Positions 29,341 through 57,218 of a stretch of 64,000 nt of DNA are shown here, piece after piece. The translations under genes were made by a program, and so were the position numbers. The DNA comes from Kudoa neothunni (Eukaryota > Animalia > Cnidaria): contig OZ199838.1 in NCBI GenBank assembly GCA_964304625.1, positions 16,413,469 through 16,477,468 of the forward strand, in the 5' to 3' direction. Within the stretch, counting starts at the first letter, position 1. Every line of letters begins with the position of its first letter. Under the pieces are notes generated by a model. That model saw nothing but the letters and a program-made list of their open reading frames with translations. It had not been told where the DNA came from and did no database searches.

Positions 29341-29647
29341 ATATGCCATTATAAATTTTTTTTTAAATTTATAAGAAAAATTCTAAAGTCACTAAGGTTG
29401 AAGGAAGTTAATTAAAAAACAAGTAACCTTAGATACTTTCGAAAATGCTAACAATCGTTCACTTTAATTGATAAATCCTTCTTTAAAAAAATTAGTTTAA
29501 AAACTTAAAATATGCGATTTTTTAATAGTATGAATATATATAACATTGTATTTATTGATGTACCAAATCCTATTATTAAATTCATATGAATGGTAATAAT
29601 TGAATCAAGATATGCAGTATAATCCGATTTACTCTCTGCACTAAAAA

Positions 29648-32588
29648 ATGAAATTTCAGTCATGCTCAGTTAGTTTATTAATTTCATTTTTATGTAATTT
29701 ATTTATGTTGATAATTTTCTTAAATTCCTATAGTTATTAATGTAAATCCGACCTCAGAAAATAAACCAGCAGTCCAAACTCCTACAAAAATACTTTCGTA
29801 TAACATTGTAGAAGGCCAAGTTCAATTGGATTTGACTGGGTCAGATTATGAAGGAGCTACGAAAAAATGCCTCATAAGAAGGGAGAAGGATGATGGAAAT
29901 GGATTTGATCAGATAAATAATTGTGTAACTAGCACTGTAACAGACAAATGTGTGCGTACTTGTGCAGGAAATGACAACAAATTAGCGTTTAGTGTGCTTT
30001 CACCAAGAACAAAATTTATCTATGTATATTCCGGAACTGAAGCTTCAGCAATCCAAGAAAAAATTAGAGGTGGAGGGGTTTTTGGACTTGCAATTCGTAA
30101 TCTAAATAAAATTATTTATTTTCATTAATTAAAAATAGCGCTCTTGGTGAATCCATCAATAACAGTGTCCATAGATACTAATACGAAAAAATTAACGCTT
30201 GCAGCCAAGACGTGTAAAAAAGTTGCCTGTCCTATTGTTTATAAAGGTATTCAATACGCGGCCGGTACAGTAGGGGCACATTGCGATTCTAATAACGGCG
30301 ACAACCAAGTTGACTTTGACCTTATGATTCCTCATTATGAAATGATATGCACAAATTACCCAAGCTTCTTTTATCATATGCCAAATCCGTACATGAAAGA
30401 AAATATTGACATATACAAACCCCAATATTACGTTACTCACAAAAGTGTTGACACTAAGACAAATTATGTCCTGAAATTTACCAACTCATTTCCTTCCGAA
30501 ATGTGTTTATTCAGTATTAAGGATGGTTCCGATACTGCTACAGAGTCAACGAACGCTTACGCATCAGTGTGCGGAGGAGGAACTGATAAACAGTGTTATG
30601 CACCTTGTGATAATGTCGAATTAACCCTTAATGCGTACAAACCAATCGTCAAAATATTAATTCAGACCAGACATCATAATTTAGAAGTAAGCAATGGAGA
30701 CATTGAAGGTTTTGACGAAAAAAAATATGGTATGATTTTTATTTAAAAAAGTCAGATATTCATTTATCATAGCTATCGAAGAGCCTGCCACTCCGAATAC
30801 ACTTTTTAGTGTACAAACGGATGTAGGGATTACGCTTAACCCTTCTCCATACAATAAAGATGGCGCAACTATAAAATTCAATACGTGCACTTTGAAGCAT
30901 TTTCCTGCCGATAAACTGAGACCAGGCGCTGGAACTAATACGCAATGCGCCAATAGCACGCCTTGTGGAAATGCCTGTGCAACACCTTCTGTTATACAGC
31001 AGTTGACTGCGGGAAAAGCTTACATAATTGAGATTACTCCAGAAAGCATAAATAATCACGCAAATTTTAAAGAATATCTATTTTTCAGAACAAGTAAGAG
31101 AAATACTCATTGCACCTATTGAATTTTTCTTAGAAGAATCTAGTTCATCAAACTTTGCTGTCACAGTTCCAATACCAACTGACGTGACTGCTGCAATTAA
31201 AGCGGTTGATGGTGACGTTGGATCAGCAACAACTGAACCGACCTGTTCCTATTACGTCAGTATAAAAGATAAAAACACGTTCGTAGAAGCAGAATGTGAA
31301 GACAGCAATCCATGTAGAGGATTTTGTAAAGACACCAAGAAGTTGATAAATCTAAACCCTAAAACAAACTACGATATTAAAGTCGTTTCACACAAAGACT
31401 ATGGAATCAAAATATTTGAAAATATTTCAACTAGTAAAATAATTTAAATTTAAGCTAATATAAATTATATTCTTTAGCTTGGTCAACCATGACCCTTTCC
31501 CAAAGATTCCTAGATAAAGGGTTTAAAGTGGCTGGAACTTTGACATCCGTTTATCCACAAGCAACATGTCACTATAAAATAAGAGAAAAAAACGGAGAGA
31601 CTCTAAAAGATGTTTATTCCTGTCCAGCAGTTGTCCCTCCGTCGCCGTCGGTCAGTCCAGCCACTGAAAATATTGCTGCTCCTCCTACATCTACTCAAAC
31701 GGAGGCAGCGCAAGAATCTAGGCTGGTCAGCGTTTCAAATTTGTCTGGAATAAAGATAGCAAGAGCAGTTAATGCAGAAGAAGAGAATTTGACATCCACT
31801 GAACCCGCCATTACTCAATCTATGTTTCCACCATGTAGCAAACCACCACTCTGCAGCAATATAATAATTAGTGATGGTTATGAGGCTAATAAAGAATACC
31901 AAGTATTGGTGACGGCTGTAGGTCGTTCAGAGGAAGTTACAATCGATATTCCTAAAAGTACTATAACAAAATTAATATAGAAATTTTCTAAATTGTCATA
32001 TAAATATAGATTCACTCCCAGAACTATCTCAAGATACGAACAAACAAATTACCGTTGTTATTGAGAGAGTAGGAGATACGTTAAAAATCACGTCATTGCT
32101 TCCAAAAGAAAAGGATGATAATTCAGTATGTCGATGGATACTGAGAGACATCACTGATGTTTCTCAACGAATAGTGAAAAAATGTGATTCCAGTAGAAGT
32201 AAAGTTTGCAAACTTCCAACTTGCAAATCATTTACTATCAAAGAGGTAAGTGATACCAATGATTATCACTTAACACTTATTCACTCCCGAGATCCCAATG
32301 TTAAAGGAATTGGAATAATAAAACGAGGTGACTAACAATTAATAATAATATCAATTATTATTATTATTATAATTAATAATTTAGGAGAGACCTCTAATCA
32401 ATCCAGGTAAAATTAATATTTTAATATTTAATTTATTATATTTTTAGGGCGAGCACTTCAATGTATTAAATTTTGAGTTGATATGTTGGAATAAGTTTTC
32501 ATTTAGGATTGTTGGAATCATTGTTCCATCCGTTATTGTTATTATAGGAGTAGGATTTTACTTTGGTTATTGGAAGAATAGAGGATAA
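29648..32588 (+). CDS. Variable surface protein, array copy 1: ~845-aa type I membrane protein with Cys-rich FN3-like modules (intact)
   Basis: Ten exons (about 29648-29693, 29734-30096, 30139-30729, 30773-31093, 31134-31433, 31478-31957, 32010-32327, two micro-exons of 22 and 15 nt, 32507-32588) splice to one 2538-nt frame. Signal peptide MKFQSCSVSLLISFLFI; TM and tail IVGIIVPSVIVIIGVGFYFGYW-KNRG*. Confidence 0.9.
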
Positions 32589-33311
32589 CTTCGATTAACT
32601 CAGTTAATCATTTGGAACATTTACATTAATTTTTATTAGTTTATAATTGAATATATTATAAATATTTGTAAATTTATTTACAAAAACTATATATTTTATT
32701 TGAAATATTGTTAGTATAATATTCGAAATTGATTGAAGTCTATCAATAAAATAATAAATGTATATTGACATAAATTAGCTGCGATAATTTTATCATTCCA
32801 TTATAAATGAAATCAATTGTATAACATTTAATAGGATAATTTAAAGCTTAAATTTTTTTCACGCAAATAATTTACAAGTTTATTCCTAAGGATTATTTTA
32901 ACAACACAAATACACTAAATTAAGATTTGTGTGTGATATCTCAGTAAAATTAGCATTAGTCTAGTTTTTATGTACTTTTATAATCCATTATAGATCTTGA
33001 GTATTTTGTTCTAAATTATTGAAAAGATTTCATTCGTAATTTTTGAAGTTTCATTTGTCGGACGAAATTAAGCTTGGTACATAAATGCGTGCAGTCTACT
33101 GATTAAGGGGAGATGATTGGGTTTAATAAGCCACTGATTGATGTTGAAAATTCAAAAATATATCAAAAATTAGAAAATAAAACGATCTTTGAATTCTATA
33201 ATAAATTAAAAAAGAATTGGAATAAGTAAATTTCATAAGTTTAAATCAAGGCCGAACCTAACTACCTTTCCGAATTGAATAACAAATTTTTAAGCATTGT
33301 AATTATTTTAT

Positions 33312-34819
33312 GGAAATGGCTATATCTTAGGTACCTGATAATCCGGTCGCGCTCAGACTATATCCCGGAGAATGAATATCTCTAAAAACCACTGCATATA
33401 TTTTGTTCAGATTTTAAATTTTATCTAATATTTACTTAATTTAATTTTTCGTAAGTATTAAAAAAATTTGCAGAAGAATAAGTTTTCAGTAGTGCAACCA
33501 TCCTAAGTCTATCAATATTAAGGTGTAATTATATTATATTTTTAAATTTTTTCGGTAAAAAAAGCATATTCCCTTTTTGAATTATTTAATATAAATAATT
33601 AATTCTTCGCTTAAAGTAATTTTAGCTTTCACTGTATACTTTCGGGTTAGACTGAAAGAGATGAATTAACATGTTTATATACGGAATATGGTTTATTTCT
33701 TGTGAAAATCTTTATATTGTCATAATAAAACGTGAATAATTAAAATTTCGATTATTACAAACATTACACTTGGTTTCTACGAAATCTTTTATATTTATCG
33801 GTGGGAAAGGCATATGAAATGAGGTTTTTAAACGTGAATCCTATAATAGAAAAGAATAAATAAAATTCTTCAGTTATTATTTGCAGGAAAAAACTCTTGG
33901 AAACAAAAAAATTCTAACAGAAGTTAAAATAAAAACAAATTTTTTGATGGTGATGGTTAATATTACTGAATTTTGTGGGGAACTTTTTTATAAGGCTATA
34001 AGTTCTATTAGCTTACTAGAATAAATATCTACAAATAGTGATGATGTTTATATCGTTCGTGCCCCCCAATAAATTTGATTATTTGTTGACAAATATATAA
34101 TTTACAATATAATATAGTTGAAGATGTGTGAAAGTATAGAAAAAGGAAATCTTTTATGATTTAATTTTTGATAATGAGAAAGAAGTGTCTCCTGTAGACT
34201 TAACATGGATGCCACTTATCAACAAGACAAAACCAGACATAAATAAATGAATTAAAACCCCATAAGGAACTAATAAATAATTGCAATAAAGCTGAAAATA
34301 GAATACAACAACCATTATTAAAAGTCAAAATATTATTATCGTTGTTGGATTTTTAAACCTCAAAATTCCATCGAAAGTAATGCCAATTGTAAGGCTAGAA
34401 AGAATTTATTTGTGAAGAGTTGTGAATATAAAAATATACAACAATAATTCACGACATCAATAAATAAAAAAATTCAATATGACATATTAAGTTTATTTTT
34501 TGTATATGGAAGCTGTTATATTTTATTATTTCTAACTCACATGATCAAGTCATAATATATTCCATATCTTTTAGGAATACAAAATAACACGAGAAAAAAA
34601 GAGAGTGAAAATTTCAATAATTGTTGTCTTATAAATGATAATTATACTTAAATATTGATGGACTCAGAATGGTAGTTGCTCTACTGAAAATTTATTCTTC
34701 TGCAAATTTTTTTTATACTTACGAAAAATTAAGTTAAATAAATATTAGATATGTAGAATGTGAACAAAATATATGCAGTAGTTTTAGAGATGTTCATTCT
34801 CTGAGATATAGCAACTTTC
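33312..34819. mobile_element. Non-autonomous long-TIR DNA element (Merlin-like GG termini) in spacer 1-2
   Basis: About 200-bp inverted repeats (33312-33530 vs 34630-34819) and an imperfect 8-bp TSD TATTTTAT/TTATTTAT. The homologous site in spacer 2-3 (about 40510) is empty. Confidence 0.65.
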
Positions 34820-34831
34820 TTATTTATTCTA

Positions 34832-35700
34832 ACCCTCGAGCAAAATGGGGTACAAATAGGGTCCAAACGATATTAGGATGTATTTTCTTTGATTAATTTT
34901 TAATTCCCAGTTCTAATGTTTTTCTTATTTTTCTATAAATCATAGATCTATAAAAAATGTTATTAATATAACTTCGAAATTTCTTAATCGAATATTAAGA
35001 TAAAAAAATCTTCCAAAGAAAATGGCGTCTTCATTGATTCAAGATGTTTATTGAAAATTTTTGAACAGAAAAACGTAATTATAATATTATTAAGAGAAAA
35101 ATTTGTTGTAAAAATTATTTTATGCCTAAAATGAATAACCCAAAAAATATACACTCAGGTGCGGATATACATATTTTTTGTCAGGTCATGGGTTTTTTTT
35201 GAAAATAAAGGCTGTAGTATTGACATCCATGACTATGATACCCCAAGTCTGTTTTATTTAACAGAAACTATGGATCAGAACAAAAATATTTTGCGTTGGT
35301 CGATACTGATGACTCCCTTATTTATAAAAATGGACGTTCGTAGGGTTAGACGGATCCATCGAAAACGCAGACGCCTGCTGAAAATATGATCAGCTTTAGT
35401 CAGGATGTGATTCATTATAATATGCAGTGGATTATTTTAAAAAAGATTGCCTCTGAGTTTTCTGAAGCGTTAAGAATAAATAAAATAATCGCGAATGCAA
35501 AAATAAATGCATCGAATTGAAAACATCGGGAAAAATTTTCAAATGAAAATTAGTATTGCAGAATGATAACAAAAAATGAGATTTATTATGTGCACTCGTT
35601 CCCAAGATAAAAAACAAACCTAGAAGACGACTTGTGTATGGCTCCTTGCTGCGAAGAACATTCAGTTTTTCTTACAAAAGCTTTGACTTATTATTTTTCG
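34832..35700 (+). mobile_element. piggyBac-like end/remnant carried in the array spacers (also about 40515-40800 and 52254-53100)
   Basis: TAACCC start followed by a GGGGTnCAAATAGnnnCC subterminal palindrome (clearest at 40770: GGGGTCCAAATAGACCCC). Degenerate ORF follows. Confidence 0.4.
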
Positions 35701-36833
35701 ATTTACGTTGTTTGTTGAACTCGTGTATGATTCACTTGAATTATTTTAACTAACATGTAATGGTAGCATTCTCACCCTTTTTTAACAACAATTATCTTAA
35801 TACAAATCCTTACTTCATGTATCAATATCTCCTTATATTTTAATTTCGTCGCTACAATATTCTTTTAATTTTAGGGTGTAAAATAATTATTCAAATATCT
35901 TAAATGTGGCGGGGGTTACGTTCTAATTTATTATATTGATGTACTCTGTAAAATTAAGTTTATTCGAAATTCGAATAATCATAAAAACCCGTAGAATCTA
36001 ATCGGTATTATAATTAAATTATTACTAAGAGTAAGAGATTTTTTATGGCAGTATGCAAAGTATTTAAAATCAATCAATTCAGTTTTAATGATTCTTAAAG
36101 TTTTTGACTTTAGCATTACCGCGCGTATGTGATGAAATATTTAATGTGTAATTATCTTTGAAAGCGTACGTGTTTTGCAAAAAAACTTCTTGGTAATGTA
36201 GAAAAATATTATGCAAATAAGTTTATACAAAAACACTAAGTTCTATATGGGCTATTTTACTCGGGGGTATCCGATTTTGGTATACTCTGATGGTTAAAGT
36301 AGAGGAACTTCATAGGTTTTTCTGTGATAAAAATACGCGAATAGCGCTTGACAAGGAATTAACAACATAACTGAGAATTAGTCACCACAAATAAAGGAAA
36401 AATATCGAAATTATATTGTTTCTTCTTTGTTCAAATATTGTAAAATTATTAAAATTAAAATAAATTTTAGTTACACTGTATGGAAATTATTTATAAATGT
36501 GTTATTTTATTTTTTACCTGTATAAGAAAATTTTTAGCCACCAAAGTTTAACGAACTTAATTATAAAAAAAGTAAGGTTAGATGATCTCAAAAATGTTAA
36601 ACGTTTACATAAATTCTTTAATCTTTATTTGAGAGAATTTTGTTTAAAAATATTAATTATAAATTTATCAGGAAAAATAAGTTCAAAAAAATAAAATACA
36701 AAATTTTTCAATCATGTGAATATATATAAAATTGGATTTATCGATGTATCAAATCCTATTGTTATGTTCATATGAATATCAATAGTTAAATCGAAATATA
36801 TAGCTTAATCTGATTTACTCTCTATACCAAAAA

Positions 36834-39781
36834 ATGAAAACTCAATTAGTCTCAGTTATTTTATTGATTGCATTTGCATGTAATTTATTTATATTGATTA
36901 TTTTATTAAATTCGTTTAGTTGTTAATATAAACAGCGCTGTTGAAACCAAACAAGCACCTCAAATTCCTACAAAAATACTTTCGTACGACATTGTAGAAA
37001 GTAAAGTCCATTTGGTTTTGACTGGATCAGATTATGAAACGGATTCAAAAAAATGTCTCATAAGAAAGGAGAACGATAATGGAAATGGATTTGATCAGAT
37101 ACATCCTTGTGTAGCTAGCGATGGAACCGATGGGACTGACAAGTGTGTACGCGCTTGTTCAGGAAATGACAATAAAATAGCGTTTAATGTGCTTTCACCA
37201 AGAACAAGATTTATCTATGTATATTCCGGAGCGCAAGCTTCAGAGATTCAAGCCAAAAATAATGGCGGAGAGGTTTTTGGACTAGCTATTCGTAACTTGA
37301 ATAAAATTATTCTTTTTTAATTTGAAGTAGCGCTCTTGGTAAACCCAAGAATCACGATATCCACAGATGCAACATCCAAAAAATTAACGCTTGCAGCCAA
37401 GACGTGTAAAAATGTTGACTGTCCTATTGTTTATAAAGGTATTCAATACGCGGCTGGTACAATGGGAGACAATTGCGATTCTGATAACAGCAATAACAAA
37501 GTTGATTTTGACCTTATGATTCCTCACTACGAGATGATATGTACGAATTACCCAAGCTTCTTTTATCATATGCCAAATCCGTACATGAAAGAAAATATTG
37601 ACATATACAAACCACAATACTACGTCACTTACAAAAAAGATGACACTGCTAAGAAAAATTATATCCTAAAATTCACCAACTCATTTCCTTCCGAAATTTG
37701 TTTATTCAGTATTAAAGACGCGTCAAGTTCTGCAACTACCAATCCTTACGAATCTGTGTGTGGGGGTGAAGCTGATAAAATGTGTTTTGCACCTTGTGAT
37801 ACTGTTGAATTAACACTTACTGTTTCCAAACGAATCGTTGAAATATTAATTCAGACTAGACATCATAATTCAAGAGAAAATGATGGAAACATTGAGGGCT
37901 ACAAGGAGAAAAAATATGGTATGATTTTTATTATGAAAATTTAGATATTTATTTATTATAGCTATCGAGGAGCCTGAAGCCGCGAATACACTTTTTAGTG
38001 CGCCAACAACTGCGGGTATTACACTTAGCCCTTCTGCATACAACCCAACCACTGGTGCCGATACAGTCAAGTTCAGTAAATGCGCTTTAAAATATTTTCC
38101 TGCGGACAAACTCAGAAAAGCTCAAGGGGACGATTTGCAATGTTCCGAAAGTGCTGCCTGTGGAGATGTTTGTGAAACAGCGTCTGTTATACAGGAGCTG
38201 ACTGCAGGGAAAGCATACATAATTGAGATCACTCCGACAACTATATCTGATCACACAGAATTTAAAGAATACCTATTTTTCAGAACAAGTAAGGAATATA
38301 TTCATAACACTCATTAAATTATTTTTAGAAGAATCTGGTACATTAACCTTCGCCGACACAGCACCCACAGCAACCGACGTGACTGCTGCAATTAAAGCGG
38401 TTGATGGTGACGTGGTAAAAACAGTAACAACTGAACCGACTTGCTCATATTATGTAAGTATAAAAGATAAAAACACGTTCGTAGAGGCAGAATGTGAAGA
38501 CAGCAACCCATGTAGAGGATTCTGTAAAGATACTAAGAAATTGATAAATCTAGACCCTAAAACAAACTACGATATTAAAGTTGTTTCACACCAAAACTAT
38601 GGAATCAAAATATTTGAAAATATTCCAACTAGTAAAAAATTTTTTAATTTAAGATAATATAAATTATATTTGTTAGCTTGGTCAACCATGACTCTTTCCT
38701 ATAGATTCCTAGATAAAGGGTTTAAAGTGGCTGGAACTTTGACATCCGTTTATCCACGAGCAATATGTCACTACAAAATAAGAGAAAAAGACGGAGAGAC
38801 TCTAAAAGATGTTTATTCCTGTCCAGAAGTTGTCCCTCCGTCGCCGTCGGTCAGTCCAGTCACTGAAGATATTGCTGCTCCTCCTTCACCTACTCAAACT
38901 CAGGAAACGAACCAACCTACGCCGGTTAACAGTTCAAATTTGTCTAGAATAAAGATAGCAAGAGCAAGTAATGCAGAAGAAGAGAATTCGACATCCACTG
39001 AACCCGCCATTACTCAATCTAAGTTTCCACCATGTAGCAAACCACCACTCTGCAGCAATATAATAATTAGTGATGGTTATGAGGCTAATAAAGAATATCA
39101 AGTATTGGTGACGGCTGTAGACCGATCAGAAGAAGTTACAATCAATATTCCTAAAAGTACTATAACAAAATTAATATAGAAATTTTCTAAATTGTCATAT
39201 AAATATAGATTCACTCCCAGAACCATCTCAAGATACAAACAAACAAATTACGGTAGTTATAGAGAGAGTAGGAGATACGTTAAAAATCACGTCATTGCTT
39301 CCAAAAGAAAAGGATGATAATTCAGTATGTCGATGGATACTGAGAGACATCACTGATGTTTCCCAACGAATAGTGAAAAAATGTGATTCCAGTAGAAGTA
39401 AAGTTTGCAAACTTCCAACTTGCAGATCATTCACTATTGAGGATGTAAGTGATACAAATGATTATCATTTAACTCTTATTCACTCCCGAGATTCCAATGT
39501 TAAAGGTGTTGGAATAATAAAACGAGGTAACTAACAATTAATAATAATAATAATTATTATAATAATTAATAATTTAGGAGAGACCTCTAATCAATCCAGG
39601 TAAAAGTTATATTTTAATGTTTAACGTATTACATTTTTAGGGCGAGCACCTCAATGTATTAAATTTTGGGTTAATATGTTGGGATAAGTTTTCATTTAGG
39701 ATTGTTGGAATTATTGTTCCAGTCGCTATTGTTATTGTAGGGGTTGGATTTTACTTTGGTTATATGAAGAATAAAGGATAA
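36834..39781 (+). CDS. Variable surface protein, array copy 2 (intact)
   Basis: Same 10-exon structure as copy 1. Signal MKTQLVSVILLIAFA; C-terminus IVGIIVPVAIVIVGVGFYFGYMKNKG*. Confidence 0.9.
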
Positions 39782-41196
39782 CTTTGATTAACTCAGTTAA
39801 ACATTTGGAACATATTACATTATTTCTTATTAGTTTATAATTAAATATATTATAAATATTCCTAAATTTATTTACCAGTAATTATCTATTTTATTTGAAA
39901 AATTGTTAGTATAATATTCGATATTAATTTAAGTCTATCAATAAAATAATAAATGTATATTGGCAAAATAAGTTGTGATAATTTTATCAATCATTTATGA
40001 ATGAAATTAAGTTTATAATATTTAATAGGATAATTTGAAGGTATAAAATTTTTGTTCACGTAAATGGTTTATAAATTTATTCCTAAGGATTATTAAATCA
40101 ACACTAACACTCTAAATTAAGATTTATGTGTAATATCTCAATAAAAGTTGAATTAATCTAGTTTTTATATACTTTTGTAAATCATTATAGATCTCGAGTA
40201 TTTTGTTCCAAACTTATTGAGGGAAGGTTTAAGTATTATTAATTTTTCTGAGCTTTATTTGTCAGAGACAATTTTGGGTGGTGCACAAAAGTGTGCTTTC
40301 AGCTTATTTAAGGAGTGATTATAGCCAGTAAACTACCAATTATTACTGAAAATTCCAATATCTATCTACAGAATTTGAAAATAAAACAAATCTATAAATT
40401 ATTGAACAATCTTACAATGATTCGGGAGAATAAAATTTCATTTGTTTAAGTCAAAACCAAACATAACAACCTTTCTAAATTGAATAACCGATTATTTGGA
40501 CATTATAGTTATTTTAACTCCCCCCCCCCCCCCCCGAATTAGATAGGTTCCATTTGGACCCCAAACGATATTATGATGCATTTTTCTCTGATTCATTTTT
40601 AATTCCCAGCGCTATATCTCAATTATTTTTCTTTCGAATATAATTCTATACAAAAATATTATAGAAATAATTTTTTAATTTCTTAGCAAAAATTAAAAAT
40701 AAAATAATCTTCCGATGAAAATGGGTCCTTAATTTACCCCATATTTTATTTAACCTTCCAAGCATTTTTGGGGTCCAAATAGACCCCAGACCCACTTTAA
40801 CCTCAATTCATTGCTTACTGAAAACGTTAAATTGGCGGTAATGAAGGAGTATACGCCTCACCGAATTCGACCTTTTGTACATGTCCTACATTCCTGATTT
40901 TTATTTCATTGTTTAAAACACATTTTTTAAATATTGAGAGAAGTGAAAAAATACACAAAATCAAAATTTTGAAAATACCCGAAAATATTCAATCGGGAAA
41001 TTTTGGTACTCACGCACGGGCATGCGCATAAATACTTTTCATCAATTTTTGAACTTTCTAAACATTCAAAAATATCTGAAACAATTTAAATCAATAAGTT
41101 AGTCTTTACTCTCTCAGAATTTTGTACAGTTCGTCAAGTAACATGAGATTTTGAAATGTTATCAACAATGCATCGTAGAATATATATATATATATA

Positions 41197-43155: not shown

Positions 43156-43612
43156 TATATATATATTAGATTTAATCAAAAATTAATATGGAATTATAAA
43201 AACATTTATTTAAATATTTTTAATTTTTATAGTTCATTAAACATTCTAATTAATGATTGAACTTAGAAATAATACCTCGTGAGTATGATTTTATTTATTT
43301 TATTCTAATTCCATTGGATATTTCTGTTGGAATCGCGCTCTAATAGAATATAACACGTTGTAATTTTGTTTACATTCCATATGAACTCGACTGCGCAGAT
43401 TTTATTGAATCTTCATGTGTAGTCTGATAAAAACACACTGAAACGCACTTTCATAAGTATACAAATTATCATCAATCTATGATTCAACTTAAATATCACA
43501 CCAAAAATTTAAACACATTGAAAAATGTAATTATATATTTTATTTTTCGATTTCTTTAACGAAATTATCTAAATTGAATATATTCATATACGGAATGTTC
43601 TGACTGATTATT

Positions 43613-43646
<34 letters not shown>

Positions 43647-44038
43647 GTAGGATATATGGAGTTACAGTTTTCAAATCTACATGATAAAATTGATTTTCTA
43701 TATTCTAGTATATATATATATATATATATATATATTACAATTGTTTGTGCAATATTTATGTATTGATGCTATAATGTTAAATATGCATATAGTATGAACA
43801 AATTTTATGTTATTAATTGGATCCTTTGCAATATAAATTTAATGTGAATTAATCATCCAAACCTAAGGTAAAACATTTTAAACTTTCCTCAAAAGTAAAT
43901 TCTTTATTTTTAAGATGTTTCTGTAATTAACGGTGCTATCTTTTGATAAACATAACAATTGATATATATATATATACACTCTATTCACATAAAAAGTAAA
44001 TACTAAATAATATCGAAGAAAAAGTAATAAATTTCAGG

Positions 44039-45181: not shown

Positions 45182-45790
45182 CTTACCACATTAGTTAAAT
45201 AGCGTCAAAAATGTAACGATTTTTTAACGCGAATCTTACGTTAGTGACAAATTTTAAAACTTAAACTTTATTGGGTAAATAAACGGTAGAACAATTATAT
45301 TAAACTAAAATTCGACTCTTAATAAAAAGTCCATGAATCGATTATATTAATAAAATTATTTTTAATTTTGAAAAACGCGGTAAATATGTCAGGGTGTATT
45401 CATCATCATATTCACTAAATATTTTACATCGGTATTACGTCAAACAGTTTTCGAGCAAAACAATTAAATATGATCTTGCAAGGATAAATAATCACTTTCT
45501 TTATAAATTTCTGGGAGAGTGAAGACTTATTTATCGATTTAATTTGGTTTGGATATTTTTGAGTGTTTAGAAAGTTCCCAAGTCGTTGAAAAATATTTAT
45601 GCGCATATCCGAGCGCGAGTACCGAATTTTTCCGAGTACGTATTTTTGGGTATTTTTAAAATTTTGATCTTGTATATTTTCTCACTTCTCTCTATATTTA
45701 AAAATGTGTTTTAAATAATGAAATCAAAATCGGGAATGTAGGACATGTGCAAAAGGTCGAATTTGATGAACCGTATACTTCCCCATTACC

Positions 45791-46010: not shown

Positions 46011-47170
46011 TAAGAGTCAAGATAATTGATACTTTAAAACGTGATACAATGGCAGTTTTTGGATTATTAGATTGGAGACTTTCATAATAATTAGTAATAT
46101 CGTACTTTTCGGCAATAGATATAGTTTTAGGAGCGTTCTGACATTAAATATTGACTTAACTAAATAATAAACAAGAAGGACCAAAAAAAGTGCATGAAAT
46201 TTGTCAATCACGTGACTTTTAGTTATATTATTTAACAGCTTTTTAAAATCATTTTTGTACAAAGTTTGATTAAAATTGTATAAGAAACATATTATATAAA
46301 TAATAACCATCCGATATTCTAACTAAATTGGTATTTAAAAGGTGTGTAAAATTGGTTACTTACTGTATTATGATTAAACAATTACTAAGGGTGAGAGGCT
46401 TTTTTATGACAATATGCAAAGTATTTAAAATAAATCATTTCAAAATTAATGATTCTCCAATTTTATTAATTTTGGGCTTTACCGCGTATATACGAGAAAA
46501 ACTTTTTGGAAATGTAGTAAAATATTATGTCAATAAGTTTATGCAAAAAAACACTAGAGTCCATATGAACTCTATTTTACTCGAAGGATATCCAATTTTG
46601 GTTTACTTGGGCGATTAACGTTTAAGACACGTCATAAGCTTTTCTGTGATAAAAGTACGCGGATAGCGCTTGAAAAGGAATCAACGACATAACTGGGAGT
46701 TAGTCACCACAAATAATGGAAAAATAGGTAAAATGTCAAAATTATATTGTTTTTTTTTGTTGAAATATTGTATAATAATTAAAATAACATTTAATTAAAT
46801 TGTATAGAAATTATTTACACATATGTTACTTTATTTTTAACCTGTATAAGAAAATATTTCATCACCAAGTTTAAACGAATTCGGTTATAAAAAAAGTAAA
46901 CTTAGATGTTTTTTTAAATGTTAAACGTTCACTTTAATTGATAAATTCTTATTTGTAAGAGTTATGGTAAAGATATTGAATATAAGCTTACCTTGAAAAA
47001 CAAAAATAAGGTTAAAAAAATAAAATATACAATTATCCAATAGTATGAATATGAGTATATATATAACATGGTATTTATTGATGTATCAAATCCTATTGTT
47101 ATGTTCATATGAATATCAATAGTTAAATCGAAATATGCAGTTTAATCTGATTTAATCTCTGCACCACAAA

Positions 47171-50127
47171 ATGAAATTTCAGTCAGTTTCAGTTAGTTTA
47201 TTAATTTCATTTTTATGTAATTTATTTAGGTTGATTATTTCATTAATATCTTATAGTTATTAATACTAATCTCGCTACTGAAAATAAACCAGCAGCTCAA
47301 GCTCCTACAAAAATACTTTCCTACAACATTGTAGAAAGGAAAGTCCATTTGGTTTTGACTGGATCAGACTATATAACGGATTCAAAAAAATGTCTTATAA
47401 GAAAAGAGAAGAATGATGGAAATGGATTTGAACAGATACATCCTTGTGTAGCTAGCGATGAAACCGATGGGAATGACAGATGCGTACGTGTTTGTGCTGG
47501 AAGTGACAACCAAATAGAGTTTAATGTGCTTTCACCAAGAACAAGATTTATCTATGTATATTCCGGAGCGCAAGCTTCAGGTATCAAAGATAAAGATACA
47601 GGTGGAGAGGTTTTTGGACTTGCAATTCGTAATCTAAATAAAATTATTTATTTTCATTAATCCAAATTAGCGCTCTTGGTGAATCCAAAAATCACGATAT
47701 CCACAGATGCACCATCGAAAAAATTAACGCTTGCAGCTAAGACATGTAAACAAGTTGCCTGCCCCATTTTTTATAAAGATATTCAATACATGGCCGGTAC
47801 AGTAGGAGCAAACTGCGATTCTGATAATAGCAACAACCAAGTTGACTTTGACCTTATGATTCCTCATTATGAAATGATATGCACAAATTACCCAAGCTTC
47901 TTTTATCATATGCCAAATCCGTACATGAAAGAAAATATTGACATATACAAACCACAATACTACGTCACTTACAAAAAAGATGACACTGCTAAGAAAAATT
48001 ATATCCTAAAATTCACCAACTCATTTCCTTCCGAAATTTGTTTTATTCAGTATTAAAGATGCGTCAAGTTCTGCAACTACCAATCCTTACGAATCTGTGT
48101 GTGGGGGGTGAAGCTGATAAAATGTGTTTTGCACCTTGTGATACTGTTGAATTAACACTTACTGTTTCCAAACGAATCGTTGAAATATTAATTCAGAATA
48201 GACATCATAATTCAAGAGAAAATGATGGAAACATTGAGGGCTACAAGGAGAAAAAATATGGTATGATTTTTATTATGAAAATTTAGATATTTATTTATTA
48301 TAGCTATCGAGGAGCCTGAAGCCGCGAATACACTTTTTAGTGCGCCAACAACTGCGGGTATTACACTTAGCCCTTCTGCATACGACCCAACCACTGGTGC
48401 CGATACAGTCAAGTTCACTACTTGTACATTAAAACATTTTCCCGCTGACAAACTCAGAACAACCCAAGGAGAAGAAACGAAATGCGGAAATAATGATGCA
48501 TGCCAAAATAATTGTGGAACAGCGTCTGTTATACAGGGACTATCTGCAGGGAAAGCATATATAATTGAGATTACTCCAGGAAACATTCAAAATCTTTCAG
48601 GTTTTAAAGAATACTTGTTTTTCAGAACAAGTAAGGAATATATTCATAACACTCATTAAATTATTTTTAGAAGAATCTGGTACATTAAACTTCGCCGACA
48701 CAGCACCCACACCAACCGACGTGACTGCTGCAATTAAAGCGGTTGCTGGTGACGTTGGATCAGCAACAACTGAACCGACCTGTTCCTATTACGTCAGTAT
48801 AAAAGATAAAAACACGTTCGTAGAAGCAGAATGTGAAGACAGCAATCCATGTAGAGGATTTTGTAAAGACACCAAGAAGTTGATAAATCTAAACCCTAAA
48901 ACAAACTACGATATTAAAGTTATTTCACACAAAGACTATGGAATCAAAATATTTAAAAATATTCCAACTAGTAAAAAAATTTGAATATAACCTAATATAA
49001 ATTATATTTGTTAGCTTGGTCAACCATGACTCTTTCCCATAAATTCCTAGATAAAGGGTTTAAAGTGGCTGGAACTTTGACATCCGTTTATCCACGAGCA
49101 ATATGTCACTACAAAATAAGAGAAAAAAACGGAGAGACTCTAAAAGATGTTTATTCCTGTCCAGAAGTTGTTCCTCCGTCGCCGCCGGTCGGTCCAGTCA
49201 CTGAAGATATTGCTGCTCCTCCTACACCTACTCAAACTCAGGAAACGACAGAATCTAGGCTGGTCAGCGTTTCAAATTTGTCTGGAATAAAAATAGCAAG
49301 ATCTGGCAATGTAGAAGCAACTGATGCCACACCCACTGAACCCACTACTACTCAATCTATGTTTCCACCATGTAGCAAACCACCACTCTGCAGCAATATA
49401 ATAATTAGTGATGGTTATGAGGCTAATAAAGAATATCAAGTATTGGTGACGGCTGTAGACCGATCAGAGGAAGTTACAATCAATATTCCTAAAAGTAACA
49501 TATAAAGGAATTAATATAGATATTTTCTAAATTGTCATATAAATATAGATTCACTCCCAGAACCATCTCAAGATACAAACAAACAAATTACGGTAGTTAT
49601 AGAGAGAGTAGGAGATACGTTAAAAATCACGTCATTGCTTCCAAAAGAAAAGGATGATAATTCAGTATGTCGATGGATACTGAGAGACATCACTGATGTT
49701 TCTCAACGAATAGTGAAAAAATGTGATTCCAGTAGAAGTAAAGTTTGCAAACTTCCAACTTGCAAATCATTTACTATCAAAGAGGTAAGTGATACCAATG
49801 ATTATCATTTAACGCTTATTCACTCCCGAGATTCCAATGTTAAAGGTGTTGGAATAATAAAACGAGGTAACTAAGACTTAATAATAATATCAATTATTAT
49901 TATTATTATAATTAATAATTTAGGAGAGACCTCTAATCAATCCAGGTAAAATTAATATTTTAATATTTAATGTATTATATTTTTAGGGCGAGCACCTCAA
50001 TGTATTAAATTTTGAGTTGATATGTTGGAATAAGTTTTCATTTAGGATTGTTGGAATCATTGTTCCAGTCGCTATTGTTATTGTAGGGGTTGGATTTTAC
50101 TTTGGTTATATGAAGAATAGAGGATAA
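47171..50127 (+). CDS. Variable surface protein, array copy 3 (two +1 indels in exon 3: pseudogene or assembly error)
   Basis: Same exon structure. Extra T (about 48041) and extra G (about 48105) in homopolymers relative to the otherwise near-identical copy 2 tract. Confidence 0.85.
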
Positions 50128-50129
50128 CT

Positions 50130-53100
50130 TTGATTAACTCAGTTAACATTTGGAACATATTACATTAATTTTTATTAGTTTATAATTTTATAATTGAATA
50201 TATTATAAATATTTGTAAATTTATTTACCAATAATTATTCATTTTATTTGAGGACCACTAAAAAATAAATTTACATCGGCAGAATAAGTTGTGATAATTT
50301 TATCATTTCATTATAAATGAAATCAATTGTATAATTTAATGTTATTAATTTATGATCACATAAATAATTTGTAAACTCATTCATAAGGATTATTTCAACA
50401 ACACAAATACACTAAATTAAGATTTGTGTGTGATATCTCAGTAAAATTAGCATTAGTCTAGTTTTTATGTACTTTTGTAATCCATTATAGATCTTGAATA
50501 TTTTATTACAAAATTATTGAAAAAATTTAATTCGTAATTTTTGAGGTTTCATTTGTCGTACAAAATTACATGTGGTGTATATATGCGTACTGTCTATTGA
50601 TTGATATCACAATTCCAAAATATATCAAAAAATTATAAAATAAAACGATCTTTGAATTCTTTAATAAATTAAATATGAATTGGAATAGTTAAATTTCATA
50701 AGTTTAAATCAAGACCGAACCTAACTACCTTTCCGAATTGAATAACAGATTTTTAAGCCTTGTAATTGTTTTATGGAAGTGGCTATATCTCAGGGAATGA
50801 ATATCTCTAAAATTACTGCATATATTTTTTTCATATTTAACATATTATCTAATATTTACTTAACTTAATTTCTCATAAGTATTAAAAATATTTGCAGTTG
50901 AATAAGTTTTCAGTAGCGCAACCATCCTTAGTCTATCAATATTAAGGTGTAATTATATTATATTTTTAAATTTTTCGATAAAAAAGCATATTCCCTTTTT
51001 GGATTATTTAATATAAATAATTAATTCTTCGCTTAATGTAATTTCGGCGTCCATTGTATACTTTCGGGTTAGAATGTTAAAGATGAATTCTAGCATGTTT
51101 ACATATAGAATATAGTTTATTTCCTGCGAAGATCCTTATATTGTCATAATAAAATATGAATAATTAAAATTTTGATTATCTCAAACATTACACATGGCCT
51201 CTAAAAATATTTTTATATTCATCGGTGGAAACACGTATGAAATAAAGTTTTTAAATGTTGGTCCTATAATAGAAAATAATGAATAAAATGCTTTAGTTAA
51301 TATTCGCAGGAAAAAACTCTTGGAAACAAAAAAATTCTAACAGAAGTTAAAATAAAAACAAATTTTTTGATGGTGATGGTTAATATTACTGAATTTTGTG
51401 GGGAACTTTTTTATAAGGCTATAAGTTCTATTAGCTTACTAGAATAAATATCTACAAATAGTGATGATGTTTATATCGTTCGTGCCCCCCAATAAATTTG
51501 ATTATTTGTTGACAAATATATAATTTACAATATAATATAGTTGAAGATGTGTGAAAGTATAGAAAAAGGAAATCTTTTATGATTTAATTTTTGATAATGA
51601 GAAAGAAGTGTCTCCTGTAGACTTAACATGGATGCCACTTATCAACAAGACAAAACCAGACATAAATAAATGAATTAAAACCCCATAAGGAACTAATAAA
51701 TAATTGCAATAAAGCTGAAAATAGAATACAACAACCATTATTAAAAGTCAAAATATTATTATCGTTGTTGGATTTTTAAACCTCAAAATTCCATCGAAAG
51801 TAATGCCAATTGTAAGGCTAGAAAGAATTTATTTGTGAAGAGTTGTGAATATAAAAATATACAACAATAATTCACGACATCAATAAATAAAAAAATTCAA
51901 TATGACATATTAAGTTTATTTTTTGTATATGGAAGCTGTTATATTTTATTATTTCTAACTCACATGATCAAGTCATAATATATTCCATATCTTTTAGGAA
52001 TACAAAATAACACGAGAAAAAAAGAGAGTGAAAATTTCAATAATTGTTGTCTTATAAATGATAATTATACTTAAATATTGATGGACTCAGAATGGTAGTT
52101 GCTCTACTGAAAATTTATTCTTCTGCAAATTTTTTTTATACTTACGAAAAATTAAGTTAAATAAATATTAGATATGTAGAATGTGAACAAAATATATGCA
52201 GTAGTTTTAGAGATGTTCATTCTCTGAGATATAGCAACTTTCTTATTTATTCTAACCCTCGAGCAAAATGGGGTACAAATAGGGTCCAAACGATATTAGG
52301 ATGTATTTTCTTTGATTAATTTTTAATTCCCAGTTCTAATGTTTTTCTTATTTTTCTATAAATCATAGATCTATAAAAAATGTTATTAATATAACTTCGA
52401 AATTTCTTAATCGAATATTAAGATAAAAAAAATCATCCAAAGAAAATGGCGTCCTCATTGATCCAAGATGTTTATTTAATATTTTTGAACAGAAAGACTT
52501 AATTATAGTATTATTAAGAGAACAATTTGTTGTAAAAATTATTTTATGCCTAAAATGAATAACCCAAAAATATACACTCAGGTGCGGATATACATATTTT
52601 TTGTCAGGTTATGGGTTTTTTTAATTAAAGGCGGTAATATTGACATCCATGACTATGATACCCCAAGTCTGTTTTATTTAACAGAAACTATGGATCAATA
52701 TATAAAGGAGATTTTGTGTTGGTCGATACTGATGATTCCCTTATTTATAAAAATGGACGTTCGTGGGGCTAGACGAATCCATCGAAAACGCAGACGCCTC
52801 CTGAAAATATGATGTGTATTAGCCAGGATATGATTCATTATAACATCCAAAGGATTATTAAAAAAAGGTTTCCTCTGAGTTTTCTGAAGCGTTAAGAATA
52901 AATAAAATAATCACGAATGCAAAAATAAATGCATCGAATTGAAAACATCAGGAAAAATTTTCAAGTGGAAATTAGTATCGCAGAATGATAACAAAAAATG
53001 AGATTTATTATGTGTACTCGTTCCCAAGATAAAAAAACTGACCTAGAACACGACTTGTGTATGGCTCCTTGCTGCAACGAACATTAAGTTTTTCTTGCAA

Positions 53101-54260
53101 AAGCTTTAAGACATTATTTTTCGATTTACGTTGTTTTTTGAACTCGCGTATAATTCATTTGAATTATTTTAACTAACATGTAATGGTAGTATTCTCATCC
53201 TTTTTTAACAACAATTATCTTAATACAAAGCTTTACCTCATGTATCAATGTCTCCTTATATTTTAATTTCGTCGCTACAATATTCTTTTAATTTTAGGGT
53301 GTTAAATAATTATTCAAATATCTTAAATGTGGCGGGGGTTACGTTCTAATTTATTATATTGATGTACTCTGTAAAATTAAGTTTATTCGAAATTCGAATA
53401 ATCATAAAAACCCGTAGAATCTAATCGGTATTATAATTAAATTATTACTAAGAGTAAGAGATTTTTTATGGCAGTATGCAAAGTATTTAAAATCAATCAA
53501 TTCAGTTTTAATGATTCTTAAAGTTTTTGACTTTAGCATTACCGCGCGTATGTGATGAAATATTTAATGTGTAATTATCTTTGAAAGCGTACGTGTTTTG
53601 CAAAAAAACTTCTTGGTAATGTAGAAAAATATTATGCAAATAAGTTTATACAAAAACACTAAGTTCTATATGGGCTATTTTACTCGGGGGTATCCGATTT
53701 TGGTATACTCTGATGGTTAAAGTAGAGGAACTTCATAGGTTTTTCTGTGATAAAAATACGCGAATAGCGCTTGACAAGGAATTAACAACATAACTGAGAA
53801 TTAGTCACCACAAATATAGGAAAAATAGGTCAAATATCAAAATTATATCGTTTCTTCTTTGTTCAAATATTGTAAAATTATTAAAATTAAAATAACTTTT
53901 AATTACACTATATAGAAATTATGTATAAGTGTGTTATTTTATTTTTCACCTGTATAGGAAAATTTTTAGCCACCAAAGTTTAACGAATTTAATTATAAAA
54001 CAAGTAAGCATAGATGCTCTCAAAAATGTTAAACGTTTACTTAAATTCTTTAATCTTTATTTTAGAGAATTATGGTAAAATGTATAAATTATAAATTTAT
54101 CAGGAAAAATAAATTCACAAAATCAAAGTATGCAATTTTCCAACAATATCAATATATCACATTGTATATATCGATGTATCAAATCCTATTGTTATGTTCA
54201 TATGAATATCAATAGTTAAATCGAAATATACAGTTTAATCTGATTTACTCTCTGTAGCAA
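50130..54260 (+). repeat. Spacer 3-4, a segmental duplicate of spacer 1-2 (about 32590-36830)
   Basis: Colinear over about 4.1 kb; 51306-52435 reads as near-identical to 33883-35010. Confidence 0.9.
50775..52242. mobile_element. Duplicate of the long-TIR non-autonomous element; a related truncated end starts at 57387
   Basis: Termini GGAAGTGGCTATATCTCAG ... CTGAGATATAGCAACTTTC; same insertion site as 33312-34819. Confidence 0.65.
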
Positions 54261-54263
54261 AAA

Positions 54264-57218
54264 ATGCAAACTCAGTTAGTCTCGGTTAGTTTATTGATTG
54301 CATTTGCATGTAATTTGTTTATATTGATTATTTTATTAAATTCTTGTAGTTATTAATACAAATCCTACTACGGAAAATAAACTAGCACCCCAAACTCCTA
54401 CAAAAATACTTTCGTATGACATTGTTGAAAGTAAAGTGTTGTTGGTTTTGACCGGATCAGATTATGAAGGAGCTACGAAAAAATGCCTCATAAGAAAAGA
54501 GAACGATAGTGGAAATGGATTTGATCACGTAAGTACATGCGAGAATAGAGATACACAGGTTGAGACAGGCAAGTGTGTACGTGCTTGTTCAGGAAATGAC
54601 AATAAAATAGCATTTAATGTGCTTTCACCCAGAACAAAGTTTATCTATGTATATTCCGGAACAGATGCCGCACAAATTCAAAATAGTAATAACGGTGGGG
54701 ATGTTTTTGGACTTGCTATTCGTAATTTAAATAAAATTATTCTTTTTTAATTGAAAATAGCGCTTTTGGTGAATCCATCAATAACAGTGTCCATAGATAC
54801 TAATACGAAAAAATTAAAATTGGCAGCCAAGACATGTAAAAGAGTTGACTGTCCCATTTTTTATAAAGGTATTCAATACGCGGCCGGTACGGGACAGGGA
54901 ACATGTGATACTGATAACATCGCCAACCAAGTTGACTTTGACCTTATGATTCCCCATTATGAGATGAAAGCACGAATTACCCGAGTTTCTTCTATCAAAT
55001 GCCAAATCCATATATGAAAAAAAATATCGACATATACAAACCCCAATACTACGTTACTTACAAAAAAGATGACGCTGATAAGAAAAATTATATCCTAAAA
55101 TTCACCAACTCATTTCCTTCCGAAATATGTTTATTCAGTATTAAAGACGCTTCGAGTGCTGCTACAGGATCTACAAAGAATTATGCATCAGTGTGCGGAG
55201 GAGGAACTGATAAAAAGTGTTTTGCACCTTGTGATACTGTTGAATTAACACTAGCTGAGTCTAAACCAATCGTCGAAATATTAATTCAGACTAGATATCA
55301 TAATTTAGATACAAGCGGTAGTAGCATTGAGGGCTATAAACAGAAAAAATATGGTATTGTTTTTTAAAGAAAATGTATCTATTCATTTATTATAGCTATC
55401 GAAGAGACTGACGCTACGAATACACTTTTTAGTACACAAACGGATGTAGGGATTACACTCAACCCTTCTCCATACAACACAGCCACCGGTACCAATTCAG
55501 TAAAGTTTGTTACGTGTGATTTAAAGCATTTTCCTGCCGATAAAATCAGAAAGACTACAGGGGATGTTTTGCAATGCAACGGTATCGATTCTTGTGGAAA
55601 TGCTTGTGCTACTCCTTCTGCTATAAAGGGACTATCTGCAGGGAAAGCATATATAATTGAGATTACTCCGACAGCCATAAATAATCATGCTGATTTTAAA
55701 GAATACCTGTTTTTCCGAACAAGTAAGGAATATATTCATAACACATATTAAATTATTCTTAGAAGAATCTGATTCATCAAACTTCGCCGACACAGCACCC
55801 ACACCAACCGACGTGAGTGCTGCAATTAAAGCGGTTGATGGTGACGTAGAAACAACAGCAGAAACTGAACCAACATGCTCATATTACGTCAGTATAAAAG
55901 ATAAAAACACGTTCGTAGAGGCAGAATGTGAAGACAGCAACCCATGTAGAGGATTCTGTAAAGATACTAAGAAATTGATAAATCTAGACCCTAAAACAAA
56001 CTACGATATTAAAGTTGTTTCACACCAAAACTATGGAATCAAAATATTTGAAAATATTCCAACTAGTAAAAAATTTTTTAATTTAAGATAATATAAATTA
56101 TATTTGTTAGCTTGGTCAACCATGACTCTTTCCTATAGATTCCTAGATAAAGGGTTTAAAGTGGCTGGAACTTTGACATCCGTTTATCCACGAGCAATAT
56201 GTCACTACAAAATAAGAGAAAAAGACGGAGAGACTTTACAAGATGTTTATTCCTGTCCAGAAGTTGTCCCTCCGTCGCCGCCGGTCAGTCCAGCCATTGA
56301 AGATATTGCTGCTCCTCCTTCACCTACTCAAACTCAGGAAACGAACCAACCTACGCCGGTTAACAGTTCAAATTTGTCTAGAATAAAGATAGCAAGAGCA
56401 AGTAATGCAGAAGAAGAGAATTCGACATCCACTGAACCCGCCATTACTCAATCTAAGTTTCCACCATGTAGCAAACCACCACTCTGCAGCAATATAATAA
56501 TTAGTGATGGTTATGAGGCTAATAAAGAATATCAAGTATTGGTGACGGCTGTAGACCGATCAGAAGAAGTTACAATCAATATTCCTAAAAGTACTATAAC
56601 AAAATTAATATAGATATTTTCTAAATTGTCATATTAATATAGACCCACTCCCTGAACTATCTCAGGATACAAACAAACAAATTACGGTAGTTATCGAGAG
56701 AGTAGGAGATACGTTAAAAATCACGTCATTGCTTCCAAAAGAAAAGGATGATAATTCAGTATGTCGATGGATACTGAGAGACATCACTGATGTTTCTCAA
56801 CGAATAGTGAAAAAATGTGATTCCAGTAGAAGTAAAGTTTGCAGACTTCCAACTTGCAGATCATTCACTATTGAGGATGTAAGTGATACCAATGATTATC
56901 ATTTAACGCTTATTCACTCCCGAGATTCCAATGTTAAAGGTGTTGGAATAATAAAACGAGGTAACTAACAATTAATAGTAATATTAATTATTATTATTAT
57001 AATTAATAATTTAGGAGAAACTTCGAATCAATCCAGGTAAAACTAATAAAATAATGTTTAATGTAATATATTTCTAGGGCGAGCACCTCAATGTATTAAA
57101 TTTTGAGTTGATATGTTGGAATAAGTTTTCATTTAGGATTGTTGGAATCATTGTTCCAGTCGCTATTGTTATTGTAGGGGTTGGATTTTACTTTGGTTAT
57201 ATGAAGAATAAAGGATAA
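54264..57218 (+). CDS. Variable surface protein, array copy 4 (one -1 indel at about 54969)
   Basis: Same exon structure. GAG ATG AAA GCA CGA lacks the T of the conserved Cys codon in EMxCTNYPSFFY. The C-terminal half is nearly identical to copy 2. Confidence 0.85.

Follow-up and report, generated by a model that had tools for sequence, protein, structure and literature searches.

Mosaic genes in a tandem array of a predicted membrane-protein family of the myxozoan Kudoa neothunni: a probable case of ordinary interlocus gene conversion

Why do four neighboring copies of one gene resemble each other in one combination in some exons and in another combination in the next? This question is raised by a 64,000-nucleotide stretch of the Kudoa neothunni genome (assembly GCA_964304625.1, contig OZ199838.1, here C1, positions 16413469-16477468; hereafter the window), in which four collinear copies of a gene of ~3.3 kb, c1 to c4, start at positions 29487, 36673, 47002 and 54105. 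The copies are mosaics. Their near-identical tracts are bounded and run across non-coding DNA, the incongruence along the alignment is statistically significant, and partners of many segments lie outside the window. We consider it probable (roughly 85%) that these mosaics stem from ordinary interlocus gene conversion in a tandem array of a very large, unnamed family of predicted type I membrane proteins. Segmental gene conversion had already been proposed in an initial annotation of the window, and this part of it is strongly supported by highly significant recombination tests.

Near-identical tracts and conflicting trees

Exons were placed from a four-way alignment of c1-c4. Each copy has ten exons (E1 to E10), all with GT-AG borders, separated by introns of 40-57 nt and with domain exons of phase 1-1; the start-to-start spacing of the copies is 7.2, 10.3 and 7.1 kb. 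Window coordinates of the copies are as follows.

29487-32800 (c1), 36673-40000 (c2), 47002-50320 (c3), 54105-57440 (c4), + strand: whole extents of the four copies
29648-32588, + strand: c1, intact gene by exon placement and splice sites
29648-29693, 29734-30096, 30139-30729, 30773-31093, 31134-31433, + strand: E1, E2, E3, E4 and E5 of c1
31478-31957, 32010-32327, 32385-32406, 32448-32462, 32507-32588, + strand: E6, E7, E8, E9 and E10 of c1
36834-39781, + strand: c2, intact mosaic gene, ten exons as in c1
47171-50127, + strand: c3, every exon open except E3, in which two single-base insertions break the frame as assembled
54264-57218, + strand: c4, every exon open except E3 (1-nt deletion near 54967)

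All motifs and pairings listed for the four copies in the initial annotation are present in the sequence. Copies c1 and c3 go together, and c2 with c4 (1~3 / 2~4), in the signal exon, in E5 (LNPK..HKDY vs LDPK..HQNY) and in E7 (KSFTIKE vs RSFTIED). The pairing 1~4 / 2~3 is found in E2 (YEGATKK vs Y(E/I)TDSKK), at the start of E3 (PSITVSIDTNTKK vs P(R/K)ITISTDA(T/P)SKK) and at the start of E4 (QTDVGITLNPSPY vs PTTAGITLSPSAY); the start of E5 pairs likewise. In a motif table of 14 copies the segment types assort independently. The remaining arrangement, c1 with c2 and c3 with c4 (12|34), which the initial annotation does not list, is seen at five consecutive sites within a patch of 23 nt (c1 31001-31023, c2 38196-38218, c3 48538-48560, c4 55630-55652), which reads QQLTAGKAY/QELTAGKAY vs QGLSAGKAY/KGLSAGKAY; all three possible four-copy pairings therefore occur.

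Within this patchwork the following tracts stand out.

37546-38075, + strand: c2 side of a tract shared with c3 (2~3), covering the second half of E3, intron 3 and the start of E4; partner c3 47886-48417
47886-48417, + strand: c3 side of the same tract; its edge at 48417 coincides with ends or branch points of short-read unitigs
38457-39543, + strand: c2 side of a near-identity tract shared with c4 (2~4), from E5 to E7 including introns 5 and 6; partner c4 55891-56977
30301-30421, + strand: tract of c1 identical to c3 (121 bp, 0 differences); partner c3 47833-47953
31174-31383, + strand: second tract of c1 shared with c3 (99.0%); partner c3 48711-48920
30149-30185, + strand: patch of c1 at the start of E3, identical to c4 (16 polymorphic sites, P <= 1e-4); partner c4 54771-54807
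33839-36404, + strand: part of the c1-c2 spacer, with two tracts that match the c3-c4 spacer at 99.5% identity

The 2~3 tract shows five differences in 538 columns, namely three substitutions and two single-base insertions in c3, and it ends abruptly on both sides, with five differences in the preceding 20 nt and seven in the following 18 nt; the difference rate is 0.9% within the tract as against 25-39% in the adjacent 20 nt. The near-identical tract of ~470 bp spanning intron 3 that had been reported for these copies is thus real and its 3' edge correct, while its 5' edge had been set ~65 nt inside a stretch in which c1, c2 and c3 are identical. Because the only carriers of the core sequence in the genome are c2 and c3 (the next best match reaches 84%), the tract argues for a direct exchange between these two copies. 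The 2~4 tract contains 17 differences in 1089 columns and includes stretches of 345 bp and 317 bp with none. The sequence type of the 1~4 patch at the start of E3 is also found in c5, c7, c9 and c10, copies of the array to which we return below. In the spacers, 33839-35008 corresponds to 51262-52431 and 35815-36404 to 53238-53827, so that tracts of 590-1170 bp at 99.5% identity are embedded in a unit of 88.7% identity.

Such tracts are not confined to the four copies. A high-stringency self-comparison of the 154-kb array returned 60 tracts of at least 150 bp and at least 98% identity, spacers included. Among the 55 pairs formed by 11 array copies we counted 118 near-identical tracts (median 420 bp, range 107-1595 bp), 101 of which include intron sequence. 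With growing distance between copies, exchange declines only weakly (rho -0.28; P about 0.02 in a Mantel-type test). Since the tracts disregard exon borders and occur in spacers, what guides the process is DNA homology, and neither exons nor cassettes are its units. The sub-exon cassette exchange suggested in the initial annotation must therefore be abandoned.

The statistical tests point in the same direction. The 177 informative sites of the four copies fall into 19 with the pattern 12|34, 77 with 13|24 and 81 with 14|23, and these patterns form 48 runs compared with 105.4 +/- 6.2 after permutation (100,000 permutations, minimum 78; p < 1e-5). In a GENECONV-like permutation test the longest series of consecutive polymorphic sites in agreement numbered 58 for 2~3, 49 for 2~4, 19 for 1~3 and 16 for 1~4 (all P <= 1e-4). 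The pairwise homoplasy index (PHI) was 0.361 for the four copies and 0.587 +/- 0.014 after permutation (z about -16), with z about -29 for 14 copies; the corresponding P <= 5e-4 is the lowest value attainable with 2,000 permutations. Block trees group c4 with c9 at the 5' end (100/100) and c4 with c2 in E5-E6 (100/97; in block E likewise 100/97, in block F 99/97), and likewise c3 with c2 in the 2~3 tract (100/100) and c3 with c5 in E5 (99/99). Approximately unbiased (AU) tests reject the rival clades with p from 5e-4 down to 1e-47. The statement that no single tree fits the copies is accordingly upheld by the runs test, PHI, the GENECONV-like test, the block trees and the AU tests alike.

Could a duplication history without any exchange mimic this patchwork, given strongly uneven rates and selection acting on convergent or conserved segments? 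The ratio of non-synonymous to synonymous divergence (dN/dS) is low in the membrane-proximal exons (0.15-0.19 in E7, 0.26-0.33 in E5), so selection does contribute to the similarity of E5 and E7. However, the tracts also extend over introns, synonymous sites and spacer DNA (0.6-1.2 kb), their edges are as abrupt as described for c2 and c3, and the conflicting clades have ~100% support each, with AU tests rejecting a common tree. We give this explanation practically no credence.

The array beyond the window and the reliability of the assembly

The picture of four copies arises because the window ends inside the array. A genome search with exon 3 and an examination of the next 90 kb revealed at least 11 copies over ~120 kb (C1:16.44-16.56 Mb), those past the window edge lying at array positions 68.3, 77.4, 84.6, 96.8, 104.0, 134.2 and 145.0 kb. 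Related copies outside the array are found at C1:16307556, C1:15546778 and C2:7082554. Overall divergence between copies is 11-17%. A two-gene unit of ~17 kb is present four times (c1 with c2, c3 with c4, c6 with c7, c8 with c9): 29487-39932 and 47002-57376 are 88.7% identical over 10.5 kb, and the unit recurs at array positions ~77-88 kb and ~97-108 kb.

In a nearest-neighbor scan of 14 copies, many stretches of c1-c4 were matched at 98-100% identity by copies beyond the window. Copy c4 is ~99% identical over 53799-55578 to c9, which is located 50 kb downstream, and its 3' end is 99.7% identical to c8. The other three behave similarly: c3 matches c5 over 48602-49369 (98.7%), c1 matches c7 over 30077-30525 (~98%) and c10 over 31728-32349 (98.7%), and c2 matches c11 over 38642-39120 (98.1%, with 100% over 38889-39000). 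Read from end to end, c2 has a 5' flank like that of c7, c9 and c4, a segment from E2 to the start of E3 like c6 and c7, the tract of c3 at 37546-38075 and that of c4 at 38457-39543.

The initial framing of the locus as four paralogues is thus correct for the window, but the array is larger and the nearest relatives of many segments were out of its sight. The same holds for the pairings 1~3 and 1~4, which exist among the four copies, but several of which are mere complements of another pairing; the long 14|23 block, for instance, is what the 2~3 relationship by itself looks like in an unrooted tree. In the 14-copy trees c1 and c3 are non-sister in three of four blocks (AU tests reject their clade in three), and c1 and c4 are never sisters.

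We propose that the array grew partly through repeated duplication of the ~17-kb two-gene unit, which would explain the 1~3 / 2~4 backbone. Later, homologous stretches of ~0.1-1.6 kb would have been copied repeatedly from paralogue to paralogue, regardless of exon, intron or spacer, by interlocus gene conversion, possibly plus some unequal crossing-over. A non-reciprocal mechanism, germline rather than somatic events and the direction of each event are what we infer, not what we observe.

Several points weigh against this scenario. The proposed direction and non-reciprocity of events are based on a single genome, and the read support for the mosaics comes from short-read unitigs. The assembly was built at a high-fidelity (HiFi) read k-mer coverage of ~7 (PMC12239612), and some single-base insertions and deletions (indels) in c3 and c10 look like homopolymer consensus errors. 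The choice of blocks and clades for AU testing was made with the data already in view. Lastly, purifying selection could explain part of the uniformity of E5-E10, a point taken up in the next section.

Low coverage in particular invites the suspicion that the patchwork is an artefact: paralogues may have been fused into a chimeric consensus, haplotigs may have been set one behind the other, or reads may have been over-corrected in a meta-assembly of low coverage. The parasite is diploid and its genome was recovered with hifiasm-meta from yellowfin tuna data (PMC12239612). Copies c3 and c10 carry +1 insertions in homopolymers, which suggests a locally weak consensus. In E3 of c3 these are a T at 48041 and a G at 48103, both in homopolymer runs, and at 48041 the unitigs favor the version without the extra T (all depth in X1, 15/23 in X2). 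Yet there is no N in the 154-kb array, copies that differ by 11-17% are too different for haplotigs or over-correction, and a tract found at two loci whose flanks differ on either side is a mosaic under any phasing of the flanks. The pattern is also pervasive, with 60 tracts among 11 copies and their spacers. Read support came from one sample (probably the assembly's own), sequenced in three or four short-read libraries, with unitigs of 150-470 nt. Segments specific to c3 are matched by these unitigs with 0 differences at single-copy depth, the depth is greater over shared tracts, and the graph has a branch point precisely at 48417, where the tract ends. An assembly artefact therefore appears very improbable as a source of the mosaics, although some single bases may be wrong.

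This matters for the copies that are broken as assembled. Ten of 14 copies have the complete set of ten open exons with canonical splice sites, start codon and signal exon, and the four others are c3, c4, c10 and the chromosome 2 copy. The deletion near 54967 in c4 sits inside a patch of ~80 nt that has no close relative (best 89%). Copy c10 (C1:16547650-16550870; array 134180-137400) has eight private +1 insertions, nearly all of them lengthening homopolymers, plus one deletion, and is 98-100% identical to other copies over long tracts; it looks more like a locally poor consensus than like an old pseudogene. The chromosome 2 copy carries several indels. Because insertions in c3 and c10 extend homopolymers and the k-mer coverage is so low, the label 'pseudogene' for broken copies may reflect consensus error.

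Exchange along the gene and the question of antigenic variation

The genes of the array are predicted to encode a type I membrane protein, given a signal peptide, a single hydrophobic helix and a four-residue tail. In the predicted product of c1 the signal peptide is followed by six exon-encoded, Cys-containing beta domains, a Pro/Ser/Thr linker (E6), two micro-exons, the transmembrane helix and the tail. For the genes of the array in general, the count is about seven Cys-containing domains of ~100 residues each, mostly one per phase-1 exon and two in E3.

Exchange is unevenly distributed along this gene. The proportion of copy pairs that lie in a shared tract rises from 0-6 of 55 in E2-E4 to 25-55 of 55 in E5-E10, and diversity is 0.12-0.36 in E2-E4 vs 0.01-0.09 in E5-E10. 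Most diverged is the core of exon 4, which is common to 0-1 of 55 copy pairs.

30880-31050 (c1), ~38075-38250 (c2), ~48417-48590 (c3), ~55509-55680 (c4), + strand: hypervariable exon 4 core, pairwise diversity 0.22-0.36

Purifying selection alone becomes a less convincing cause of the uniform half, because introns 5, 6, 7 and 9 are as uniform (0.05-0.10) as exons 5-10. Under gene conversion, E5-E10 would represent similar copies in which conversion is frequent and near-uniformity follows as concerted evolution; in the membrane-distal exons E2-E4 conversion would be rarer and leave sharp-edged patches, such that each gene becomes a different mosaic, and the most diverged core of exon 4 would lie essentially outside conversion. 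The 5' flanks of the copies are alike (diversity 0.14).

We also considered whether the variable cores are cassettes shuffled in from elsewhere. Outside donors of the odd patches were searched for and none was found: the best genome-wide match to the exon 4 core of c3 is 79%, and the patch 54850-55010 of c4 has no outside donor either (best match 89%). The idea was rejected.

The initial annotation compared the mosaics with antigenic-variation systems, in which segmental conversion builds new surface antigens; known examples are the mosaic VSG genes of Trypanosoma brucei, vlsE of Borrelia, msp2 of Anaplasma, ves1 of Babesia bovis and MSG of Pneumocystis. Applied to Kudoa, such a programmed diversity system would draw segments from a large archive that includes pseudogene donors and express the mosaics one at a time against fish immunity. 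There are real similarities. The family is large and of surface type, with no fewer than 450 candidates resembling exon 3 in a genome of 40 Mb; the predicted topology places the diversity membrane-distally on top of a uniform membrane-proximal stalk; mosaics pieced together from paralogues occur in exons 2-4; and some of the copies broken as assembled share tracts with intact ones. Moreover, unrelated gene families have led to a proposal of antigenic variation in another myxozoan (bioRxiv 10.64898/2026.02.11.705288).

The layout of the locus nevertheless does not match. A silent-donor/expression-site architecture was sought across 14 copies, as predicted from gene structure, and was not seen. 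With start codon, signal exon and every splice site in place in 10 of 14 of them, the copies do not make up a silent archive; their 5' flanks are conserved, there is no sign of one expression site fed by silent cassettes, and the 'pseudogenes' themselves are, as said, in doubt. Nor is exchange focused on the variable exposed region. Sharing is highest in the conserved stalk, tracts are equally frequent in introns and spacers, and the hypervariable core of exon 4 is unexchanged and without a donor elsewhere in the genome. An excess of amino-acid change, as expected under diversifying selection, does not show in the variable windows: the ratio of non-synonymous to synonymous differences per site (pN/pS) is 0.46-0.86 across them, and in the exon 4 hypervariable windows it is 0.55-0.66 (pN 0.33-0.42, pS about 0.6). 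Exon-wide dN/dS is 0.15-0.5, with 0.7-0.95 in E6. In Kudoa conversion mostly erases differences and mainly homogenizes the membrane-proximal half, while in the systems named above it is centered on the variable region. Antigenic variation therefore seems an unlikely explanation to us, and the likeness drawn initially is not supported.

A closer parallel to the gene conversion favored here is offered by animal tandem families in which interlocus gene conversion is well known, among them MHC class I/II, KIR/LILR and other immunoglobulin-superfamily receptor clusters, the globins and the constant regions of protocadherins. As in these, tandem paralogues share sharp-edged tracts of ~0.1-1.6 kb that ignore exon borders, conserved parts are homogenized, the most diverged ligand-facing parts remain distinct, and trees conflict along the gene. 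In contrast to these, the Kudoa family is unnamed and without a Pfam match, and it belongs to a myxozoan cnidarian.

Among myxozoans, candidate variant surface families have been described from Sphaerospora molnari, which are CXXC-rich and VSP-like or RIFIN/STEVOR-like (bioRxiv 10.64898/2026.02.11.705288). Both cases concern expanded, lineage-restricted myxozoan membrane proteins discussed as possible tools of immune evasion. By description, the Kudoa proteins differ in being chains of predicted beta-sandwich domains with 3-4 Cys each. Neither fibronectin nor gene conversion is mentioned in the text of that paper.

Three further observations concern sequence change within the gene. In the Pro/Ser/Thr linker (31645-31760 and its homologues in c2-c4) pooled pN/pS reaches 2-5.7 in 15-codon windows with few synonymous differences, which could reflect relaxed constraint, low-complexity slippage or selection. 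The short introns next to E2-E4 diverge by 0.16-0.23, and synonymous divergence (dS) in these exons is two to three times as high (0.41-0.72); this could stem from constraint on the tiny introns or their AT-richness, or from conversion that spares the diverged exon cores. In the exon 4 model introduced below, variable residues show no significant difference in placement between strands and loops (p = 0.08).

The gene family, its surroundings and its meaning

The genome used here comprises 40.26 Mb in four contigs (C1 17.15 Mb, C2 12.04 Mb); it was published as a 40.2-Mb assembly with an N50 of 12.0 Mb, three chromosomes plus mitochondrion, 30.4% GC and introns of 49 nt, to which very few transcriptomic reads mapped (PMC12239612). 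Of the RNA runs consulted here, X10 gave 0 reads on the locus, and the other listed ones share no sequence words with the stretch. All three chromosomes of this genome carry candidates, at least 450 resembling exon 3, 321 resembling exon 4 and 304 resembling exon 7, and these often lie clustered in tandem (C2:9.79-9.87 Mb and C3:0.07-1.0 Mb, for example). Compared with the 5,316 proteins predicted from protein hints in the published annotation (PMC12239612), this number suggests that much of the family may lack annotation.

All protein searches, alignments and fold predictions were made on single exons. A Pfam search with six exon translations gave nothing above threshold. Exon 5 matched the fn3 domain (PF00041) with 16.7 bits, below the gathering cut-off of 25 (E = 0.0087); the other exons gave no match. 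The AlphaFold model of exon 4, based on an alignment of 27 sequences, is a seven-strand beta domain (predicted local distance difference test score 71, predicted template-modeling score 0.61), and its top Foldseek matches in the PDB are nearly all fn3 domains, albeit weak ones (E 0.03-0.2, template-modeling scores 0.5-0.6). From these weak structure matches and the sub-threshold match of exon 5, a fibronectin-III-like fold of the domains is likely, not established.

A set of 1.84 billion representative proteins contains just 14 public homologues, all of them singleton fragments without a name. An exon 3-like open reading frame, 37% identical, was found on a 7.3-kb Logan contig of SRR31175926, beside genes for SNF5/INI1 and ribosomal protein S14 that have short introns. 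The contig probably derives from another myxozoan, and the family is therefore not confined to the genome of Kudoa neothunni.

The array lies ~0.7 Mb from the end of the 17.15-Mb chromosome. Upstream of it are a dihydrouridine synthase fragment and the C-terminal exons of MCM7 (11287-11652 and 13879-14565, both on the - strand); with such housekeeping neighbors the array is set in a normal gene neighborhood. Rfam and tRNA scans of the window gave no match. One larger element lies outside the repeated gene.

40837-45790, strand not assigned: transposon remnant at the junction between two units, with inverted repeats of ~290 bp at 40837-41129 and 45499-45790

This element of ~5 kb has inverted repeats that are 83.6% alike, and it contains fragments of DDE_1 (pogo/Tc1-type) and IS1595/ISXO2-like DDE transposases, which suggests nested or decayed DNA transposons. 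Two further pairs of inverted repeats of ~175 bp, 84-86% alike and ~1.1 kb apart, hold the same place in both intra-unit spacers (33358-33532 / 34638-34811 and 50777-50956 / 52061-52240). They may be an insertion resembling a miniature inverted-repeat transposable element that predates the duplication of the unit.

We found no published description of this family or of nuclear gene conversion in Myxozoa. New here are the two-gene duplication unit, the partners outside the window, the converted spacers and the caution with regard to four-copy pairings. Since the mechanism is textbook, the finding leaves the understanding of multigene families unchanged. Its value is descriptive, in that a very large, unannotated family of surface type in a reduced cnidarian parasite would be seen to evolve through frequent copying between paralogues. 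A practical consequence is that recombination has to be taken into account before trees, orthology calls and dN/dS tests of this family can be relied on, and that subsets of copies, as in the 64-kb window, can mislead.

Kudoa is a parasite of fish muscle that spoils the flesh of tuna and other fish. One may speculate that the fn3-like family, with hundreds of genes and possibly several per cent of the gene set, forms a variant surface coat of Kudoa for which conversion makes new ectodomain mosaics against the adaptive immunity of teleosts. We regard this as a long shot; if true, it would be the first system of the antigenic-variation type in an animal parasite of the phylum Cnidaria. Independent of this, the family is a natural first candidate for studies of host interaction and immune evasion in Kudoa.

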